DNA of 58,329 nt, filler included, from Platydemus manokwari (Eukaryota): the NCBI GenBank assembly GCA_037951405.1. It is 4 parts of 4 records of this genome, joined end to end, with 100 filler letters (N's around TTAATTAATTAA, not from the genome) between each part and the next. Parts side by side here need not be neighbours in the genome. Positions count along the whole stretch, not along the records: positions 12,472 to 26,311 come from JBBMOY011600297.1; 3 more parts are not named here. The stretch is one strand, 5' to 3'. The notes below the pieces were generated by a model. The model had not been told where the DNA came from. It was given only the letters and a program-made list of their open reading frames with translations, and made no database searches. Made by a program: the position numbers and the translations under genes. The stretch's first letter is position 1. Each line of letters opens with the position of its first letter. Shown in pieces: positions 12,472-26,311 of this stretch.

Positions 12472-13852
12472 CATTAAAAATTCTGATACTAAATAAAAAT
12501 CAAATATATTTCATCATTATCATTTGATAAGTTTAATTATAATGCATACTTTAATATATTTAAATTTAGCGTAGATTTCAAATAGATATTTTTAAAATTA
12601 TTTATAGAATGAAGATTAATCAATTCGTGATTTCAATATAGAAATATTAGACAAAATTATCATTAATTCACAAAAAAACGTATTAAGTTTGGTATACATT
12701 CACATGACTTTAATTAGTGGTTTTCATCTACACTGAGTTTTGGTGTTCTGTTCATGAAAGAAAATTTCTGTAGTAAAACAACAATAACCAATAACATTCT
12801 ATCAAAATATGAAATGTCAAAGTATTGATAAATAAAATTAAGTTTCAATATTGTTAAATTTATCAACAATAAACCGAAATTGTACAGAAAATCAAATCAC
12901 AAAATGTTTTACTTGAAATATACGAAAAACGAATTTAATAAAATAATTCTTTATGATAGCAATAATAATAATAATGAACAAATACAAAAAAATGATCCTA
13001 ATTAACATCCGTAATATCATTTATTGAATATTTGTTTTCACAAAAACATTTAGCGCAATCCAAACATAGATTTGATACACCAACAGTAGATATATATAGA
13101 GATAATTGGCTTACATAATGGGAACACGGTTCGAAAATACAAATAAATCACAAAAATAGAAAAATATGGGACATTCATAAAATAAATCCAGAGTCATTAT
13201 ATTCAGTCTATTGGTTGCATTAATATTCAGTTACAAAGGTCACGCGATAACTGTTTGGTATTATCAAATAGTGTTGGAACTAAATAAATATGATTATGTA
13301 TAAATTTATATCATAATAACCAGGAAATCCAATACAGTAAAATAATAAAGAAGAAATAACAATCATCATCATCATTATCATCGCCATCGGCATCGACAAC
13401 ATCATGATCCTGATCATCATCATTAATATAGGCTATCAAAAATGAATGACCATAACCATTACCATCAGAGGAATGTGTGTACATTTTGTCAATAAAATTA
13501 TTGGATTATTTTTCTGTTGCATTGTTGAGTAGTGGAGAAATAGAGAAAGCGATCAATAAAGCTCTTGTAACACGTAATAGATACACATTAAAATATATAT
13601 ATGTATATTGATAATCGCACACAATTCTATTATATGTACATAGAATCCGACAGAGAGAGATAGAAATGATGACAATAATATTCGTAGCAATAATAAACAA
13701 AAAATCAAAGTCATTTTTACAATATCTTTATATATAAATATGGCTCTAGTGTAAGTAATGAGATTGTTGCTGTGATTGATTAAAGTCCATCACTCTAAGA
13801 CAAGGGATCACAGGACTAGCGGCACAGTTATCATTTTATTATACTGGTGGCG

Positions 13853-16800
13853 CTAAAACATTGGTTGCTCAATTATCCCATTGTTTCTATGGCCACGTGT
13901 TACCTGGTTAACTTCTTGATCTGGTAACAGCTCCACAACAGCTCTAACTTTATTGTTCAAGTTTTCGTACGCTTTTAAAGCTTCTTCATTTGAAGTAAAG
14001 TGCAACAACACCCACCTGGATGCTAGATTTGGGTGCATGTGAAGTAGGCCAGAGAAGTTGTGATTTGTAAAGACGTTCTTTAACATTTCTATATTGATAT
14101 GACTTGGTAGATCACGAATCAAAACATATGTCATGCTGGTACGATTGACACTTGAACACACACCATTCAAGCTATTGGGCAATCGATTAACGTTGTTGTT
14201 GTTCCCAACTAGAAGAAAAAAACAATTAATGGAAAAAATCAATAAATAAAATTTGAAAGAGAAATATCTGGAATTCAAACAATAATAATTTAATTTCGTG
14301 TGGAATTTCAGTAACTCCAATTCTAATCACAAATCATTACCATAACTATTAATTTGAATTAAATTGAATAAAAAATTTTTTAATTTTAGTGTCAATACTA
14401 TGATATTCAAGAGATCATTGAAATATTTGTAAATCTTACTGTTTTCACCAGAATTGTTTATTGCCACCTTATGACATTATCAATTGTTTGAACTATTAAT
14501 TTAATACATATCAATTATTTTGAAAGCTAATCTTTTATCAGTCTAGAGCTAATCCTGGCATAAAAAACGCCTATGAATCAAGGCTATAGAATATTGATCG
14601 AAACATTTTGTAATCCCATAATCTTGGTGCATAACTAGAATGGGAATAATTTTCTAATAAATCGATTTGTTTTCATAGGAACTCTATAGTCACGCTATGA
14701 GCATTATTTTATCATCGATGCGAGATATTACTTCAAATTATTTTATTATCAGACATAATAATCCTGAACTGAAGCGTCGTGAAATATAAACAAGATAAAT
14801 GTTTACAAAACATTGATTTTAAAAGTTCTATTTGTCATATAAATCACAATGATTAATATAAATGTAGCAATAATTAATATCATTCATATAAAATCTCAAA
14901 AAATTCATTCCTAACAATAGATTGGTATTATTACATTATGCAATTTATTGGTCACATCTCTGAAGATCATTTTATAATCGAAATTATTAGGCACATATAT
15001 ATGTATATACATCTTGTTTTTATGATAGAATGGAAAAGAAATACTTATAAATTGCTTATAAATTATAAATTCCCGATCAAAATATAGTTTATGTTTTGGC
15101 AGATTTGTTCATAATTTTAATAATACAATTTTAAACAAATATATTTCGGATATCTTGTTTTCCACAGATAATAAAACTCGATATAAAATTCAACATCTGA
15201 GATAATAGGAAAACTCTAGTGGGTCATAGATCTAATTGAAAAAAATATTTTGAATTTTTACACATATATATTTAATGGGAAATATATATTAATTAATTTT
15301 ATCACAATATCTTGTCAAATCTTAAACAATATCGATTATAGAATTATTATTTCAATCACAAGCACGATTTTAACAATCAATATTTGACAGTTCAATTTTT
15401 AAATATAAATTGCAAAATATAAATAATAATAGTTATAAATAGTAATAGAGTAATAATTAATTACAATGAGAATAGTAAAATTAATGAGCGTGTTGAAAAT
15501 GATGAATTGAAATATTAGAGCATATCATCATGTACTTATTGTTGATAATATTAATCATTCTCTAATCAAATATAAAAGATTATCACAATACAAATAATAA
15601 TCATAATAATAATATTCACCATCATTTGGTCCATTAAGTGAATTAACTACACTCGGGTTAGCCAACTTTTCCAAATGATCATTGGTAATAGATAATAAAC
15701 TTCTTGGTCCAGCTCCCAGTGTAACATTGGGATCATCGCGCTGTGAATAGCTGATACCAGGCCAAGGTTGACCTGGCACAAATTCCGAAATATTAGCTGA
15801 TATATGAGAGATATCTGTGGAATGTAAATAATTAACGAATCGCATCAAGTCTGTTATTAAATATTACCACGAGAGGAACTAAATGCTGAAGAGACTCTGC
15901 TTCCGATAGAGGAAGGCAGCGTTTGAGACATTGAAAGAGCAGTAGTGATTGCGCTATTAGCAGTTGAGTTGTTATTGCCAGTGGAGTCACTAGCACAGTT
16001 TGAGGTGATTTGCAATTTCGAATTAGTCGAATTGCTATTGTTTATACTGTTATTTGAGATTAAATCCATATCGTCGTTCAGATTTGGCCCGTTACTCATT
16101 GAATGAGAATCTGAGTTCGCGCTGAATGCATTGGTGACACTCGATGATGTTGTAGCAGAATTGGCATTCGGCATCACTCGAGAATGCCACATTGGGTTTG
16201 ATTGGCGATGTGTGGAAATGCAATTAATTTGAGAATTGCGATTGAAATTGTTAAATGACTGAGGAGGTAATGGTCCCCCGTTGGGAATGCTTGGATTATA
16301 AAACCCTCCAGGTTTATCCGTGCCCATGTACGGTGATATGGTGCTAGGTGAAGGCAAAGTTCCTTGAGACCAGAGATCCATGCGACTTTCTAATTAAATT
16401 TTATATATTAAAACAGGAACAATTTGACTATATAAGATATGTCTGTAACTTGTATAAATATCAATATATATATATATATGATAATATAATATAATCTATA
16501 ACTATATATATTCTCCAAAGCTGAGAAGATTGAAAATATAAAAATTTCAATTAAATTATTAAGTCAAGCTCAATGAATAAGTAAATGATAAGCTGATATT
16601 ACTTTGGAGCTTTAATTCATTCATCTGAACTGAAAGATCTGAAAGTGTCCCCGATTGAGACTGTGAAGGAACACCAGAAGCTGAAGGCTGAATTGTTCGA
16701 GAAACCATTGATAAAAGTGGGTTTGAAGAGTTTGTATTCATCATCCCATTTGGCATTTGATTATTTACCATTGACATCTGAGATCTGATAACTTTGAGGG

Positions 16801-17338
16801 TTGTCTGTTGAGTGTTAAGCTGCTGTCGAACCTCATTAAGAGTGCGAGTCATCTCCTGAATAAAGGCTTGAGATCCAGCGATTGAACGCAGACCATGAAT
16901 GCGCTGCATTAATTCTTGCTGCTTTGATTGGAGCTGGGTTATTTCACTGATGATTTGCTTTTCCAAAAGAATGTGATTATCTGATGGCATTCGATTCCCC
17001 ATAGGCATTTGCATATGTTGCATCATGTGCGGCTTTAGCGGTTGATTATTAGATGGTATCATCGATTGGGGCATATATCCTGATCCAAGCATTACTCCAT
17101 TGTCAGGTTCCACGGGATTCACTCGGAAATTTTCATGTGGCATATTCCAATCATTGCGAGATGCCATCATATTGGAGTGATTTATAGATGGATTTTTCAT
17201 ATCCATGAAAGGGCGATTTAATTCCATTGAATTATTAAACATAGTATTCTGGGAATCTTCTTTTCGAAATCCAACATTGACCATTTGTTTGGATTTCGTA
17301 TTTAAAGCCATGCGATTATTTGGTATCATATTCACATT
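13853..17338 (-). CDS. TNRC6: GW182/TNRC6 (gawky)-family miRNA effector, C-terminal ~600 aa, 5' part not found
   Basis: Exons 17338-16603, 16389-15868, 15814-15620, 14208-13853 in phase (1809 nt). Degenerate UBA (QMVNVGFRKED), Q/M/N-rich region, CIM-1-like KSRMDLW, PAM2 SEFVPGQPWPG...DDPNVT (cf. human EFRPGEPWKG...DPYVT) and C-terminal RRM (YVLIRDLPSHINIEMLK...VLLHFTSNEEALKAYENLN), all in GW182 order. Confidence 0.85.
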
Positions 17339-18396
17339 CTAAATCATTGAAAATATTAAAAACCCAATTGATATTACCATATAAACAAGACTATGTATTC
17401 CAATAAAATTAAAAATTTAGAAAAAAAATGTAAGACACTTATACACCATAAGCACTATAATCAAAGCAGAAAATTAATCATAAAATTTTCAGCAATAAAT
17501 ATATAATATAATTATAGATCACAATGAAAAAATTTCAATATAAATCGTGAAAATTTTGAAATAGTATTGAAATCATTAAATACACTTATAATATTGCGTA
17601 GGTTATTTCTATTTGTTGATAATAAAATATTTAGCACGCATTAAATTAAGTGTAGACAAGTCATGAAAGAAAGGACATTTGGTACGATAAGTGACCGCAT
17701 AACAAGTTCGAAAATCACAATTTTGTTAGTTAATAATTATGGATGAAATAATTTTATTATTATCATGCGCGAATTTGCATATTAGAATTCGTAATGCTAT
17801 GTGATCTAATCTCTACAGAATATCAGAATAAACAATAACTTATTTTATCAAGCAATTAAAATAAATCTTGATGGAAATTACTGAAATAAATTCTCATCCA
17901 GCAAATATCAAAAACATTTTATGAAAAACTTTCAAATCTATTTGATTATTTCAATCTAGCTATGTTTTCATCTGATTTTCAATTATATTCACATTAACAA
18001 TGCCATTATAATACAAATAGTGATGATTAAAACCGTAATTGTGAATCAGTGAATTAAAATTAATCCAAAAATTGATTAAAAAAATAATTTTAAGATAAGA
18101 AAATATTGGAATACGATTTTTATATTATTATATTGAAAATACTAGTCAGTATCCATTTCATTAACATAGAAAAGTTAATAAAGGTTTTGTAATCATTCAA
18201 TATAAAATTTGTCACAAATTTGATTCCACATCATTAATTTATGGAACGATTTGATATTAATTGACAGTTCTAGGAAATATACCTGTTATGTTATTTTAAC
18301 CGAAAATCATGTATCTTGAAGCACTATTTTTAAAGCCATTTTCTGAACATCCACTTTGAAATTCATTTCAATTTTTATCATAAATCATTTATTTAG

Positions 18397-21300
18397 AGGT
18401 TCACCATTGAAGCAAGCAGATAAGAAAGCTGTTTTACAAAGAGTTGAAGATTTCTTGCACACTTTGATTATGACGATATTTTTCCGACATCGAGCGTCTG
18501 TGGGTAAATCTATTACAAAAGAAGATATTTATGCACACATAATATTTCATATATTGTGTATGAAACCAATATCACACAGTAAATTGATGAAGAAGCTCAA
18601 TCCTGCATTACAAAAGTATCCGAAAGGTAACTTAATGGAAATTATCGATAAAGTAGCAGATCAAAGCCTGAATTCTCAAATTGTAATATTCAGTGCTAAA
18701 AAATCTTTACTTGCGAAACACTTTGATAGATATTCTCCACATTACTCAATACAAGATCGAAATGAAGTAAAAGACTGTGCAAGTTGTTTTAATAATATTG
18801 ACAAGTTTTTTCTAAAAGGCTGAGTTATGGGTTCAAAATTGTTTTAAAAAAGATGACCTACCTACAGCGATGAATCCACCAATACCCATAGATTTATCTG
18901 ATGATTGCCTATCTTTATACAATTACGTATCAAATGAATGCTTTGGAGAAATTCTGAATAAGATTTTATATTTCTGTATAACAAAAGCAAATGGAGATTG
19001 TTGGACAGATACAATTCTGGATATGGTTCTTTATTTGATTGGATCATGTTTGTTGGAAGACATAAAAGTTCTAGAATCGTAAGATATTCTTTTGTTCATA
19101 AATCAATATTTCGGCTAAAGTTAAGAAAATGAGTCCTAAAACAAAATTTTTAATTTGTTGAGTGTATTGCAAAAATCTATATAGTTTATTTGATTATATT
19201 CTTAAAAAACAATTTGAATTATTAAATTAAATACTTAAGAAGAATTTTAGTTGTCTGAAATGAAATATTAAATACACTAGATCCTCAAAATCTCCTAAAA
19301 TTTGATTATCTTAAAGTAGGTCATAGAATGTCAATTTTCAATTTATTAGCAAGGACTCCTTTTTAAAATTAGAATTAAATTGAGAGGTGCTTTATATATT
19401 GAAATTAATGTTAATTTGCTATTGCTCAATCCAATAACATTCCTCTTTAAGTATACAGAATACAAGTTATTACCTAGTATTATTTCATAAAATATTAGTT
19501 GATAATGAATTCTAAAAGTTAAACTAGGAAAGTATATTTTATCAATTGATCATTTATATATTTTTTAATATTTATTTTCTATTTTAAAATATTATTCGAT
19601 TTCAAAATCCTCACACAAATAAAAATATCTTGAACATAGTATAATGTGCTGATTTTATATTAATGAAAAGCTAATAATTTTATTTACAAATATTTAAACT
19701 TTGATTACTGCAATGTTGTTGGTTTTTTTTAAACATATTTATCATTTAAGTGTTGTTTTAGTAAATTTGATTCTATAGTCATAGTGTAATCAAATAGACA
19801 TTTGTCATTTAAAGGAAAGACATTACTTGGATAAATTTTTTTATGCATTTAGGGCTAAATACTATTATTTCTAAAATTAATTCTAGAAAAATTAATGAAA
19901 TATTTTATGAATTAACCAATTGAAAATTATTCTGGGAAATTTAATTCCGGTTAAAAATACGAATCCATACCTTATTTTATTTTGCTTCTATTATTTTAAG
20001 GGGAAATATTTCTTCTTTTCTGCATCTTTAGGCAACTGAGTGGGATTTACGACATGGTTATTTTCTATCAATAAAAGGTAAAGCACCGAAATCTTATATA
20101 AAATATTTGACAATTTTTTTAAAACTAAAAATAACTAATATTTACATAAACTGAATAATATTGCCTTCGTGTTTTATCGTGTAAACATAACATTGGCACA
20201 ATAATAACCATTATAAAATATCAAAATTATTTAGGCTCTTATTCATTGTGGCCTTTAAATGTTAATTTTCATCAACTGATTAAAGTTGTTAAAAATTTCA
20301 ATTATATTTTTTAGATCTCCAGAAAACGCGAGGCCATTGTTTATTGATACAGTTACCAATAAAGGTCCCAGTGTTGATATCATTGGTAATTTAGAGTTAT
20401 TATGCGATAAAATAACTTGTGATCATCAACTTGAGTTAATAAAGTAGGTGTTTTATTTTTAAATCATTATTATTTGTCATTTTGTATTATACTACTTATA
20501 TTCGTTTAATATGGAGATTTTACAATTGACTGTTTTATAAATTTTCAAAACGATCATATATTCATTAATAATGTATTTAATACAATTTAATTTGTATAAC
20601 GCATTTTGGATTGCTTTTAGCAACACAAATGAAATACAGATTTTTGTTTTGTGTTTTTAAAAAAACGAGTGGGTAGAAAACTTTTTTCTGAAAGACTTAT
20701 TGAAAATAAATGTTACCTGAATTATATGTCAGTGATTCATTTGTCAAAAATGGAATTCAAAATTATAACATTTGTGGATTAAGTTTTGAAATATATTCAT
20801 ATTATACAGTTTCGGTACTTTCGAAATTAAAGTGGTTACGAAGATCTGATAATATTTTATTAATCATTCTTCATTTACTAGAAACACAATTTAATTGGAA
20901 GTAAAAATCTCTTGTATCTTTTCTTGCCGACCGCATAAAATATAAACTTTATATATATATGTGTGTGCTTGTGTGCTAGAAGAATAAATCGGGTCCTTTG
21001 AATTTATTTGGATTATTAATGGTTATTTGTTATAGTATAGCATTTTTATATTAAATTTAATCTTTGTTCTAACATTAACATATTTTAATATTAAATTAAG
21101 TTGAGCTTAAATAAAATAAATCTCAAATATAATTTATTATAGATGGACTATTAGGAAGTGGAATGATATTATTCGAATTAAAACGTTCGGAATTTCAGAT
21201 TCCAATCTTACAGACAACAAAATGGATACTGAAATGGTGGATAAAGATAGTGGGATAGATAACGCTCAGGTGTTACACCAAGTAAGAATTAAATTGAAAT

Positions 21301-24300
21301 ATTTCCTAATTATATTGAGAAAATATATTTTAACGATAATTCGGATTTAGATATGTTATTATGTAGTTTACAGATCTATTTGTTTACGTTTACTTGCACT
21401 TGTTTGTATATTCTACTTTTTAGGCAAAAGTTGCAAAGGCAGATGCAGCGAAAAAGAGAAGAGAACAATTGATGAGCAAAATGTGGAATATGCAAAAGAA
21501 ATTTATTAATGAAAATTCTGAGCTACTTGTAGAGAACGCAGATATTGTAGCTACTTTGATTCAGAAGTCAAAGCGTTATAGTTATTTTTTAGGAGGCTAG
21601 TACGACTAAAGATTGCATTGATTCTCATACGAGAATATCAAAAGAGCGAGATTTAACTTGTATTCTTTGTCAAGAAAGAAACAGCGAGGATAATAAAGAT
21701 AGACCAATAGTCCTTATTGCGGGAGCTTGGAGATCTTCGGTGTTGGCTAAGCATCCTATTATCAATAAAGTGATGGATCAACCTAAAGCATCTGTTTCTT
21801 CTAATCCAACCAGTGCTTCAGAAAATAATTTGAATGAAACAAATGAGACAATTTTACCTGTAAGAACATTTTTATTAATTTGTTACTTGAATTGTCTAAA
21901 TTGAATTATTATTTGTTAAAATATAAATGTTTCAATTATTCTTCCAGGTATGGACAAATACCACTGATGAGGATGGTAACGAAATCTATCCTGTTACAAC
22001 ACGATCAGTTATTTCAATGTTGGATCATGCAGAAGAAACATTTATTACAACTTGTGGTCATGTCATGCATTATGATTGCAAAACGAGCTACATGAAAGAT
22101 ATGGTCAAACAGCGGCAAAATATAGCTAGAACTAAAGGGGTTATGTATCCAAGAATCTATAATCGATGCCCTTTATGCAAATGCGTTTGCAACATTGATA
22201 TTCCTATCATTAAAACCGAATTGGATTACGAAAATGTTACTTCAGATAATGCTCCTGTCATATCATTCGAATCTTGGATTGATAAATTTATTCACTGGAC
22301 ACCGACTATTGCTTGTCACTGTGGAGCAGATATCAAGAAAGTTGATGGATCAATTCGTTGGTGGAATAAGGTAAATTAAATATTATCTTGTTTGACTTTA
22401 AATATATAACTAATGAAAATCAATATTAATTTAAGAAAATATACTTAAAATCTTTCTTTTTTAGTTTTATTTTTTAGTATATTTATAGTTGATGGATATT
22501 CCATTTCACACCCTTTGAAAAATAATCAGTATTGAATATATTGATTAGGAAATACCTCTAATTTCATGTCTAAAGCTAATTCAATTAAGTTAACTGAAAT
22601 TGGGAAAAAATTGCATAGATTTTCATCAAATTTGTAAAATTAAAATAACTTAAAAAAATTAATTTCATTGTCAAAAGTACCATCTAAATATATTGTATTC
22701 AGACATATATAACTTTGGTTTACTAATCCAATTCTATTAGAGAATCAATTTTATTCAAAAAATAGCTTTTTTCCAATATACATACATAGAATATTTCGTT
22801 TCTTTGGACTATTGATCATTAATTTAAAAATATTTGTTCACCTTTGATTTTTTAAGCTATTAAATAGGAAATATTAACAACAATTCTAAATGATTTATGA
22901 AATACATTTTAAATTACTAAATTTAGTTATCAAATAATTTTTATGATTTTTGAAGGGCACATTGATATAGATTCATAATTAAGTTAACAAAGGTTTTCGT
23001 GGGTTCGAATCAAAATGTGCGCTAATTACTAGATGATGAATTTGAGATATAAGATAAGAATGAGTTTAAAATTTGAGATTTTCATTAGTTACATTGACAA
23101 GCTTTCATGACTCTAAAATGATCTTCATTAATAGAAGCTGTTTAGTTGTTCAAATAAATTTTAAGATTTAATTATGTGGTTATATAATGAATTATATCAA
23201 AAATATTTCAGTTATATTTTTATTTTCCACTTTAAAGTGCTGCTTGAAATTATTTGGTGTATATTATATTATTCCAAGGAAATGAGTCTAGATTTGATTA
23301 AAAATCGTTTCATAACCAGGTTTATCTTATCAAAATAAATATTTCGCTCTAATGAAAGAAAGCTTATAAATGAATTTTACATTTCAAAATGTAACCTTTA
23401 ATTATTTCATTTTTTAATAATTGATAAAACTATTGAAAATTCATGTTTAATTGGCATTGTAATATGATATTTATTATAACAATCCCTTCATAGATAGGAA
23501 CTCAGTTGTCTAATTTCATGAAATTGAATTCGTCAATAAAGGGAAATGATTCTTCTGCTACAGATGATGATTTAATATCCTGTTTGGCTTATCGAACATC
23601 TCTGGCTATAAAATTACAACCGACTAATTTATCCAAAGAGACTTATAAAAATTTCGAAAATGTTCGAAGCAGCATATCAGAAAGCTCTTCCCAAGAATTA
23701 ATCGAACTTGATTATGCTGTCATCTACACGCTTTCCGTTTGGGAAAAGGTATGCTTTATTTTTTTTATAACGGCAAATAATAATTTTTGTAATGGTGGAC
23801 TTTTTCTTTGAGATATGGTACGAAGCAGATTTAATTTTTTTAATCCGACCAATTTAGATAATGACTAAACAGAATTATTCACTTTTATTGGATGTTCCAG
23901 AACGCCATGTGGATGGTTTGAAGTGTTTGATCAAAGCTGTTTGTAAATCCCACAAATATTTTACAAATTCGGAATCAGTTAGTCGTGAATGCCAATCATT
24001 TTTCATGTTTTTACGACAAATGTTGTTTGATTGTAATACACCCGGTTTAAACAAAGCTTGGTTAGATTTGAATAAATTTCAAGTTCCACTGTTCATATTG
24101 GAGGTATCGTATTTCTTGTTACCATTTAACCGGGTGATGATAAGTATTTGTTAGGTCGATTTTATATATGTACTCGGATCATTACTGTTTCTCAGAAACT
24201 CTCTTCCCGTACAAGAAGAAAATAGCAATCAGAAAGAATTTTTGGACAGCCGAAATTACAATTTCTATGTTGTTCGATTTATATATCAATTTGCTTCTGT

Positions 24301-25488
24301 TCAAGCTTTGTTATCGTTGGAAAATACCAATGTCTATAACATTGATGTTGCATTAGGCCAATTGAAAACCCATTCTCCGCAGATCTGGTCAAATGTATAT
24401 CAATTATTAAATATTTACTACATCTGAACATTGTTATGTTAGGAAAATATCTATAATCTTTATCTACTACGAGAATCATTGGGCTGTAAATTCAATTATC
24501 GGAATAGAAAAAATTTAAGATCAGATGAAGTTGCTGTATGTTTTTCCCGATCATTATTACCTTTTCTCAGAATTACTGCTTTTCTTTTGCATGAAATGGG
24601 TTCAATAACTATTCCTACCAGTTTCGGTAATCTCTAACTTTTGTTATTTGGTAGTACTTTTTTTTATCTCTTATTGCAGCTCATTCTGATGCCGAGTTCA
24701 ATGATCTCATTAAGATTCTTAATCTGGATTTGGTTCCTTTTGAAATACAAAGTTTTCCCACCTATATTGATAATCATCTCAAACTTATCAGTGATTCCAA
24801 ATCAGTCGAACCAAAAACGTTTTGGAATACTTCTTTACCTCATATTATGCCAGAGTCTCTACCGAAATTGATTGATTTGCCAAGAGAATTTACGGATGTA
24901 ATAACACTGGGTCTGGATAGAGGGTTAGATTTTCGTGATTTGCATCAGTATAATGGAGTATAATTTCAAAGCTTGCATTCTAGTTTATTACTTAAGATAT
25001 TCCTATTAAATATCGATTTATTTATTTAGGTGCTCTCTTAGTCAAAAAGCAACCGGAACTGTCTCAGAGATGTCAATTTGTTTAATTTGTGGAATTACTG
25101 TTTGTCTGAGTGGGTATTGCTGTAGAAGGAGAGAAGAGCCCTCTGGAGCAATAATCAGTGGTGCTCAAATACATTCTATACAGTGTCATGAGGGTTACTC
25201 GCTATTCTTAAATATTAGAAATTCCAAGGTTGTTGTGTTTTTCTATCAAGCTCGGTGGCAAATTTCTTTGGATCCCGTGTATATGGATAAATTCGGAGAG
25301 ACTGATATAGATTTACAGTATTTTTTTTCATTAAACGTTTAATTTCATGTTTTTTGAATTTGCCTAGGCGTGGAAACCCCTTGTTTCTAAATTCAGAAGC
25401 TTATGCTAAACTAGAAAGAAGTTGGCTTGATCACAGTATTGGTTGCATTGTTAATGAGGGATTTTTCTCCAATGATTTTTTTGTGTAA
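18397..25488 (+). CDS. UBR1/UBR2-type N-degron E3 ubiquitin ligase, central and C-terminal part (UBR box and N-domain absent)
   Basis: About 14 in-phase exons (approx. 18397-18766, 18819-19078, 20315-20443, 21143-21281, 21424-21546, 21593-21859, 21948-22370, 23494-23748, 23858-24103, 24155-24394, 24443-24627, 24680-24923, 25030-25317, 25368-25488). Motifs: HILCMKPISHSKL, KKRREQLMSKMWNMQKKFI, split RING-H2 CILCQE...CGHVMHYDC...CPLCK, LPFLRITAF, LIDLP, CLICG, YMDKFGETD...RGNPLFL. Confidence 0.92.
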
Positions 25489-26311
25489 TAAGGGAACATT
25501 GTGAATATTGGTGATTAACTTCTGCCCCATCCATATAGTTGTACCATGGTTTTTATTTGACAATACATTGCCTGATCAGATCTAAATGATGATTCAAACT
25601 TTATATCACTTATGCGCGCCTCTTAGCATCATGTAATACCGTCAATAAAAACGTGTTCTCAATTTGATATAATTCAAATAGAAGCAATGTTTCCGTGATT
25701 TGATTTTTTTTTCATTTGTGTATTACACACTGGTAACGGTTGAATAGGTTGTGATATTAAAAATTATAAGCGATATTAATGTTGTTAATGGTGATAGTAA
25801 TAATTATATTATTAATTGCAGCGATGATAATTTCTAAGTTTATAAATGTGAATTTATGTTCCATTGGTGAAACAGAAAGTGGATTTTATATACTTCTGAT
25901 AAATCAGGAATTTTATTTATATAAGTTATCAAACAATATTCTATGGATAATAAATGACAACGCTGATACACGAAATAACAATCTATTTCGATGAAAAATA
26001 TCAGTTGCAATTCTTTTACACTTTTTATGGTAACGTTAGATTTCTGGTTAATCGATTTATTCTCTTCATAAGATAGTTAAAATAAATTTAATGGAATACT
26101 ACGTACTGATTTTATATTTTTAAATCATCTGGTACGAGATTTATTTAAAAGGATGGCATGGAAACTCTTAGTAATGTATTTTAAAGTAATTTCAAATTCT
26201 ACTGGCTGCAAATAAAATACAAATCAAAGTACAACGGAATCTTTATTATAGGAAACGATATAAATTACAATACATATTGTAGTCAAATACTAAACTTTGA
26301 TAAGAAGATTT

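Follow-up and report, generated by a model that had tools for sequence, protein, structure and literature searches.

Why do only the back halves of two genes, one GW182-like (minus strand) and one UBR1/2-like (plus strand), lie head to head with approximately 1 kb between them in the Platydemus manokwari assembly GCA_037951405.1? The window is a stretch of 58,329 nucleotides joined from four parts of this genome, and both genes are in the part that comes from record JBBMOY011600297.1 (positions 12472-26311; 13,840 nt, ~28% GC), which carries spliced eukaryotic genes on both strands. A sequence-only reading of the window had reported two headless genes with intact downstream parts and no gap between them. 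This description is borne out: all 18 modelled exons (18/18) combine an open frame with canonical splice sites, and no N's occur inside 12472-26311. Each fragment is a real and intact 3' portion of an ordinary single gene, and both genes belong to one AT-rich animal genome. A new kind of gene is a less likely cause of the layout than an effect of the assembly or the contig edge, and most probably there is no biological feature behind the "headless genes".

The plus-strand gene was modelled by dynamic programming as 14 GT-AG exons (18397-25488) that give an open frame of 1077 amino acids. Its junctions were checked by eye, except those of exons 3 and 4, whose edges stay uncertain. Homology searches for both genes were run exon by exon, and joined translations were used only for frame tests. 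The exons of this gene are as follows.

18397-18766 and 18819-19078, plus strand: UBR-like exons 1 and 2, separated by a 52-nt intron; winged-helix domain, then a helical region
~20315-20434 and ~21155-21281, plus strand: UBR-like exons 3 and 4, from the dynamic-programming model with a manual phase check; edges uncertain
21424-21546, 21593-21859 and 21948-22370, plus strand: UBR-like exons 5 to 7, with introns of 46 nt and 88 nt; basic helix and RING
23494-25488, plus strand: UBR-like exons 8 to 14; C-terminal helical region and PRT6_C/UBLC, with the stop at 25486-25488

The predicted protein is colinear with human UBR1 from approximately residue 725 through the C-terminal end. Exon 1 matches the UBR1-like winged-helix family (PF22960, E 9.2e-11, 42.2 bits against a cut-off of 27) and corresponds to residues 739-842 of the 1749 in human UBR1 (E 1.8e-5), and the segment of exons 1 and 2 aligns with UBR2 868-940. 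The RING is in the UBR1 position (human UBR1 1149-1237, E 1.1e-6); Pfam zf-C3HC4 matches with E 0.0013, and generic RING families of Pfam match slightly under the cut-off. The C-terminal exons match PRT6_C (PF18995, E 3.3e-22, 79.4 bits against a cut-off of 26.2) and correspond to UBR1 1620-1703 and UBR2 1630-1709, the UBR2 match having E 2e-9. The final intron is confirmed by a spliced relative, a 159-amino-acid partial UBR model (P0004, UniParc UPI000600D8DA). By these matches, the plus-strand gene clearly encodes a UBR1/2-type ligase (N-recognin). As in human UBR1 and UBR2, the winged-helix, RING and PRT6_C/UBLC domains occur in the same order and with the same spacing (UBR1 ~725-1749). In contrast to the human proteins, the UBR box, a zinc finger with the type-1 N-degron site, and the ClpS-like N-domain, together approximately the first 725 residues, are absent from 12472-26311.

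Exon 1 of the UBR-like gene starts at 18397, directly after a TAG at 18394-18396, and one base completes a codon. The TAG and a start at around residue 700-750 of UBR1 had been recognized before, and the alignment places the start at approximately residue 725. Upstream of 18397 the frame is open for just 17 codons, with no start codon. The first ATG after 18397 in any frame is the in-frame ATG at 18471. Because homology to UBR1 residues 739-749 precedes this ATG, exon 1 is an internal exon.

UBR-like introns are either 46-53 nt or 0.1-1.2 kb long. Mini-introns of 46-53 nt (18767-18818, 21547-21592, 24395-24442, 24627-24679, 25318-25367 and, in the minus-strand gene, 15815-15867) coexist in these genes with introns of 0.7-1.4 kb, and the acceptors are mostly TAG, not CAG.

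The minus-strand gene was modelled as four exons (17338-16603, 16389-15868, 15814-15620 and 14208-13856) with GT-AG introns and matching phases, encoding approximately 600 amino acids.

16603-17338, minus strand: GW182-like exon A, 245 amino acids, from an ORF and splice model
15868-16389, minus strand: GW182-like exon B, a disordered Ser/Asn-rich middle region with two Trp, bounded by phase-consistent GT-AG junctions
15620-15814, minus strand: GW182-like exon C, with the PAM2-like motif EFVPGQPW
13856-14208, minus strand: GW182-like exon D, an RRM, then a stop at 13856-13858 or a possible donor at 13903

In the predicted protein, a disordered region is followed by a helical hairpin, then by a PAM2-like motif and a GW182-type RRM; the ~600 residues include five Trp and no GW/WG dipeptides. 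Exon A comprises a disordered Met/Asn/Pro-rich stretch, the helical hairpin, and a Ser/Gln-rich tail. In an AlphaFold2 model of this exon, residues 1-116 have pLDDT below 50, and residues 120-150 and 157-193 (31 and 37 residues) form a confident two-helix hairpin. Exon B has the top coding scores within 12472-26311 in a codon-usage scan and matches no Pfam family. For EFVPGQPW in exon C, the Pfam family TNRC6-PABC_bdg gives E 0.041, below the cut-off, and among PDB entries the exon weakly matches an engineered 'superPAM2' peptide (E 0.83). Exon D matches Pfam RRM_1 with E 0.025, also below the cut-off, and its top PDB match is the Drosophila GW182 RRM (2wbr, E 0.016, 70 residues). The PAM2-like motif precedes the RRM by one exon, which is the expected order. 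Members of the GW182/TNRC6 family bind Argonaute, CCR4-NOT, and PAN2-PAN3, and their PAM2 motif, between M1 and M2, binds the MLLE domain of PABP. These three matches, weak but colinear, suggest that the minus-strand gene is GW182-like, on weaker evidence than that for UBR. Farther along the minus strand, downstream of the RRM exon, an Asp/His/Gly-rich open segment (13362-13472) has the best coding score outside both gene models; this segment may represent another C-terminal exon of the GW182-like gene or just low-complexity sequence.

The 5' edge of exon A is at 17338, immediately after a T-rich tract that ends in TAG (17339-17341), and this TAG both closes the frame of the exon and serves as an acceptor. 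The sequence-only reading had placed the start of the gene at this TAG, just before a UBA-like region. The position stands, and the UBA-like region does not: no exon of the gene has a Pfam UBA match. A UBA domain in exon A was rejected on this ground and because the AlphaFold2 model is a two-helix hairpin (120-193) and not a compact three-helix fold. An in-frame ATG is present at codon 4 (17329-17327), 9 nt past the acceptor-like site, so the spliced-leader AUG proposed earlier for this gene is superfluous. An out-of-frame minimal ATG-TGA at 17337-17332 lies ahead of the in-frame ATG and is relevant only if exon A is the true first exon.

In canonical GW182 proteins, the Q-rich, PAM2, and RRM parts follow an N-terminal GW-repeat domain and a UBA-like domain (PMC4615383). 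The visible protein resembles GW182/TNRC6 proteins (Drosophila Gawky and human TNRC6A-C) in the order of its features, which are a disordered or coiled region, a Trp-bearing middle, the PAM2-like EFVPGQPW, and the RRM. All of the sequence matches are weak, and neither the GW/WG-repeat domain nor the UBA-like domain is present. It is also similar to AIN-1 and AIN-2 of C. elegans, which are short, GW-poor functional analogues, in its length (~600-650 amino acids) and its few Trp residues. However, AIN-1 and AIN-2 have no defined Q-rich region, UBA, or RRM (PMC4615383), whereas the gene found here, with its PAM2-like motif and RRM, is of the canonical type. To judge from its domains, the visible gene looks like a canonical GW182 gene without its front.

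Searches for the missing fronts within the contig were negative. In a six-frame codon-usage scan and a motif scan, the minus strand right of 17339 was free of GW-rich or W-rich exons, and the plus strand left of 18397 was free of Cys/His-rich UBR-box exons. These scans agree with the earlier observation that there are no GW/WG exons in the UBR introns and no UBR-box exons in the GW182 introns. Outside the gene models, the codon-usage scan detected only antisense shadows of known exons. The N-terminal Argonaute-binding GW/WG domain and the UBR box are therefore absent from 12472-26311, and both may lie off the contig; the ClpS-like N-domain is likewise not encoded anywhere in this interval. Small hidden 5' exons within 12472-26311 were rejected by the same codon-usage and motif scans.

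Relatives were found for both genes in the same place. Exon A and the UBR C-terminal (PRT6_C) exon each have one relative that is 79% identical, and both relatives (P0001 and P0003) are in the ENA assembly ERZ27256860, a metagenome-type assembly in which the contigs with relatives are approximately 1.1-1.3 kb. The called ORF of the exon A relative, P0001, starts with Met at the same place, so the boundary of exon A is conserved. The related species in ERZ27256860 clusters at 90% with UPI000600D8DA (P0004). Word searches with exon A, the UBR PRT6_C exon, and P0004, whose length window leaves out full-length relatives of single exons, returned only the one relative from ERZ27256860. A two-sequence HMMER profile searched against 1.8 billion representatives revealed no exon A relatives beyond one close species, and JGI metagenome contigs gave no matches; exon A is fast-evolving. 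The nearest Atlas clusters to the GW182-like protein are of 776 amino acids from Rotifera (0.79) and of 646 amino acids from Nematoda, annotated 'GW182 middle domain' (0.78); with scores below the reliable level, these clusters are leads only, and the Atlas leads for the UBR-like protein were uninformative. Since each half of the contig has a relative of 79% identity in the same ENA assembly, the contig is unlikely to be a cross-organism chimera. We rejected this candidate, as both halves are equally diverged from relatives in one sample.

Only one public run, here called X1, contains DNA of 12472-26311 (95% of sampled words matched), and it may be the source data of the assembly; the search of public runs turned up no RNA run with this DNA. 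The evidence from X1 consists of k-mer-assembled contigs, not reads, aligned to 15400-21300. Together with the sequence itself, these contigs define four features in and near the interval that separates the genes.

17339-18396, no strand: spacer between the 5'-truncated genes, 1058 nt, 22.6% GC, no N
17370-17763, no strand: spacer segment with approximately twofold contig depth (25.2 and 23.5, against 12.8 for the spanning contig)
18089-18354, no strand: join without support from X1; the match of contig 2 (2539 nt) ends at 18088, and depth is 0 in 18158-18354
19109-19340, no strand: high-copy dispersed repeat in the second UBR intron, which belongs to neither gene

The spacer is bounded by the two acceptor-like TAGs, at 17339-17341 (minus) and 18394-18396 (plus). 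A six-frame codon-usage scan detected no coding signal in it on either strand, and its repeats are chance-level AT-rich matches only. An X1 contig of 2539 nt fits 15626-18088 with one mismatch; right of 18088 it continues for 37 letters that do not match the path of the window, and its left unmatched end falls in a repeat skipped by the alignment. X1 contigs have zero depth at 18158-18354 and also leave 18552-18748 uncovered. On the UBR side they are short, with a depth of ~3-8 against 12.8 on the GW182 side, although contig depth is a poor measure that seems to follow GC, and a hole in contigs proves nothing. The departure at 18088 is thus suggestive, a hint of a misjoin and not proof.

The double-depth segment (17370-17763, ~400 nt, noncoding) probably has a second copy, at least 90% similar, elsewhere in the genome. 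At 19109-19340, summed X1 contig depth reaches 183,354, and the repeat contains the ends of more than 100 contigs. Neither this repeat nor the rest of 12472-26311 has an Rfam or tRNA match, and the repeat may be a MITE or SINE of the host genome. An (AT)n microsatellite at 16450-16490, in the first visible GW182 intron, has contig depth up to 293. The joints in the contig alignment (18395 to 19108 and 20866 to 17335 among them) were taken as chance, all their sides being 20-29 letters of AT-rich sequence or high-copy repeat.

Two truncations, each at an intron, meet at one spot, and this therefore points to a single structural cause. We tentatively favor an intragenomic misjoin or collapse, to which we give slightly less than an even chance; that the join is an artefact is our inference. 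A misjoin might have occurred while a short draft contig was being built. Alternately, a collapse might have dropped a segment with both 5' halves, in which case the genes are perhaps divergent neighbours in reality. The assembler perhaps switched paths at a short AT-rich word shared within the spacer, where 18089-18354 is most suspect, and other contigs would carry the UBR-box exons and the Argonaute-binding exons with GW repeats. One event at one place would account for both independent truncations, each at an intron position. The missing parts are those that are normal in both families, and the visible GW182 part has no GW/WG at all; the UBR exon is internal, given the UBR1 homology upstream of its first ATG. 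The 2539-nt X1 contig departs after 18088, X1 contigs are missing at 18158-18354 and 18552-18748, and the lower depth on the UBR side points weakly in the same direction, as depth follows GC. The contig is only 13,840 nt long in a repeat-rich genome, with a repeat of summed depth above 180,000 at a distance of 700 nt, and the locus was selected for its oddity, which would enrich for artefacts. As in repeat- or low-complexity-mediated chimeric contigs of short-read drafts, fragments of unrelated genes are joined in AT-rich noncoding sequence, and an independent k-mer assembly (X1) departs from the join. However, the suspected junction has no N and no obvious long repeat, a difference from such chimeric contigs, and both sides are of one lineage by their relatives in the same ENA assembly. 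Also, the contig hole is not probative, and the 37 unmatched letters could reflect a heterozygous variant or an alignment effect. A chimeric assembly was ranked first in the sequence-only reading as well; this ranking matches the scant X1 contig evidence (the end of the match at 18088 and the hole at 18158-18354), whereas its cross-organism form is unlikely.

The simplest biological alternative is that the contig is correct, the 5' exons are beyond its ends, and the GW182-like gene is antisense within a large UBR intron. We consider this unlikely, although it keeps some weight. The UBR intron, ending at the acceptor at 18396, would then span at least 5.9 kb, and the exons upstream of it would lie left of 12472. 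Within it, the GW182-like gene may be complete, short, and GW-poor, starting at the ATG at 17329; less likely, its 5' exons are beyond 26311 and the two genes are interleaved, which requires two mutually spanning introns, a rare arrangement. Intron-nested genes are common in animals, other introns in the same gene reach 1.1-1.4 kb, and the sequence is gap-free with both sides from one lineage. The in-frame ATG 9 nt past the acceptor-like site, where the ORF of the relative also starts with M, is suggestive of a true start, but Met makes up 11% of exon A, so an ATG within the first five codons has a chance of ~40%. Nesting is simple only for a GW182-like gene that is short by nature. The closest Atlas clusters, as leads only, are of 776 and 646 amino acids against the ~600 visible (scores 0.79 and 0.78), yet a protein that lacks GW/WG and UBA while keeping PAM2 and a GW182-type RRM resembles a canonical GW182 without its front, and X1 contig support is missing at 18089-18354. 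A real structural rearrangement in the DNA of the animal is distinctly unlikely. Possible forms are a deletion that joined introns of divergent neighbours, one breakpoint of an inversion whose ends fall in a GW182 intron and a UBR intron, and a partial duplicate locus. The rearrangement would be present on one haplotype or beside intact copies elsewhere, so that the fragments would be young, nonfunctional remnants. Deletion of the middle of a head-to-head pair, or an inversion between same-strand genes, would yield the exact layout observed, and the X1 contig leaves the path at 18088 as it would with two alleles or paths; the lower depth on the UBR side adds a weak indication. With 18 of 18 exons open and flanked by canonical splice sites, however, any inactivation would have to be very recent, and the GW182 exons show no extra contig depth from a second copy. 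On present evidence, a real variant of this kind is not distinguishable from an assembly error.

The remaining readings take the junction as real and the fragments as expressed. That the fragments are each expressed alone (driven from the spacer, or by a spliced leader at 17338 and 18397), or that the 3' halves reside in each other's introns, is very doubtful. It is highly improbable that both truncated genes work, with expression driven by the 1-kb spacer they share or with spliced leaders as caps at the two acceptors; in that case the GW182 product would consist of the silencing domain only and act independently of Argonaute, and the ligase would lack a UBR box and start at the ATG at 18471. 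Good acceptor-like sites are present at both exon starts, followed by first in-frame ATGs at 17329 and 18471, both frames are intact, and mini-introns of 46-53 nt are typical of several phyla with trans-splicing. However, the stretch homologous to UBR1 residues 739-749 precedes the ATG at 18471, and two unprecedented, independent truncations side by side are far less economical than one structural event; the literature on GW182 with a spliced leader yielded nothing relevant. Barely credible is the proposal that genic trans-splicing, which is very rare and known from Drosophila mod(mdg4) and lola, attaches 5' halves transcribed at other loci to these 3' halves. Its fit is formal only, in that both fragments are intact and begin with an acceptor, and a pair of adjacent cases would be extraordinary.

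As it stands, the locus flags a probable misjoin in a draft assembly, and it provides usable partial gene models for two conserved genes from a poorly sampled, AT-rich animal lineage. Should the junction prove real and both fragments be expressed, the minus-strand product would be a natural Argonaute-independent GW182 silencing domain, with PAM2, RRM, and W-motifs, and the plus-strand product would be a UBR ligase without the UBR box that reads N-degrons. If true, both products would bear on how such scaffolds reach their targets.
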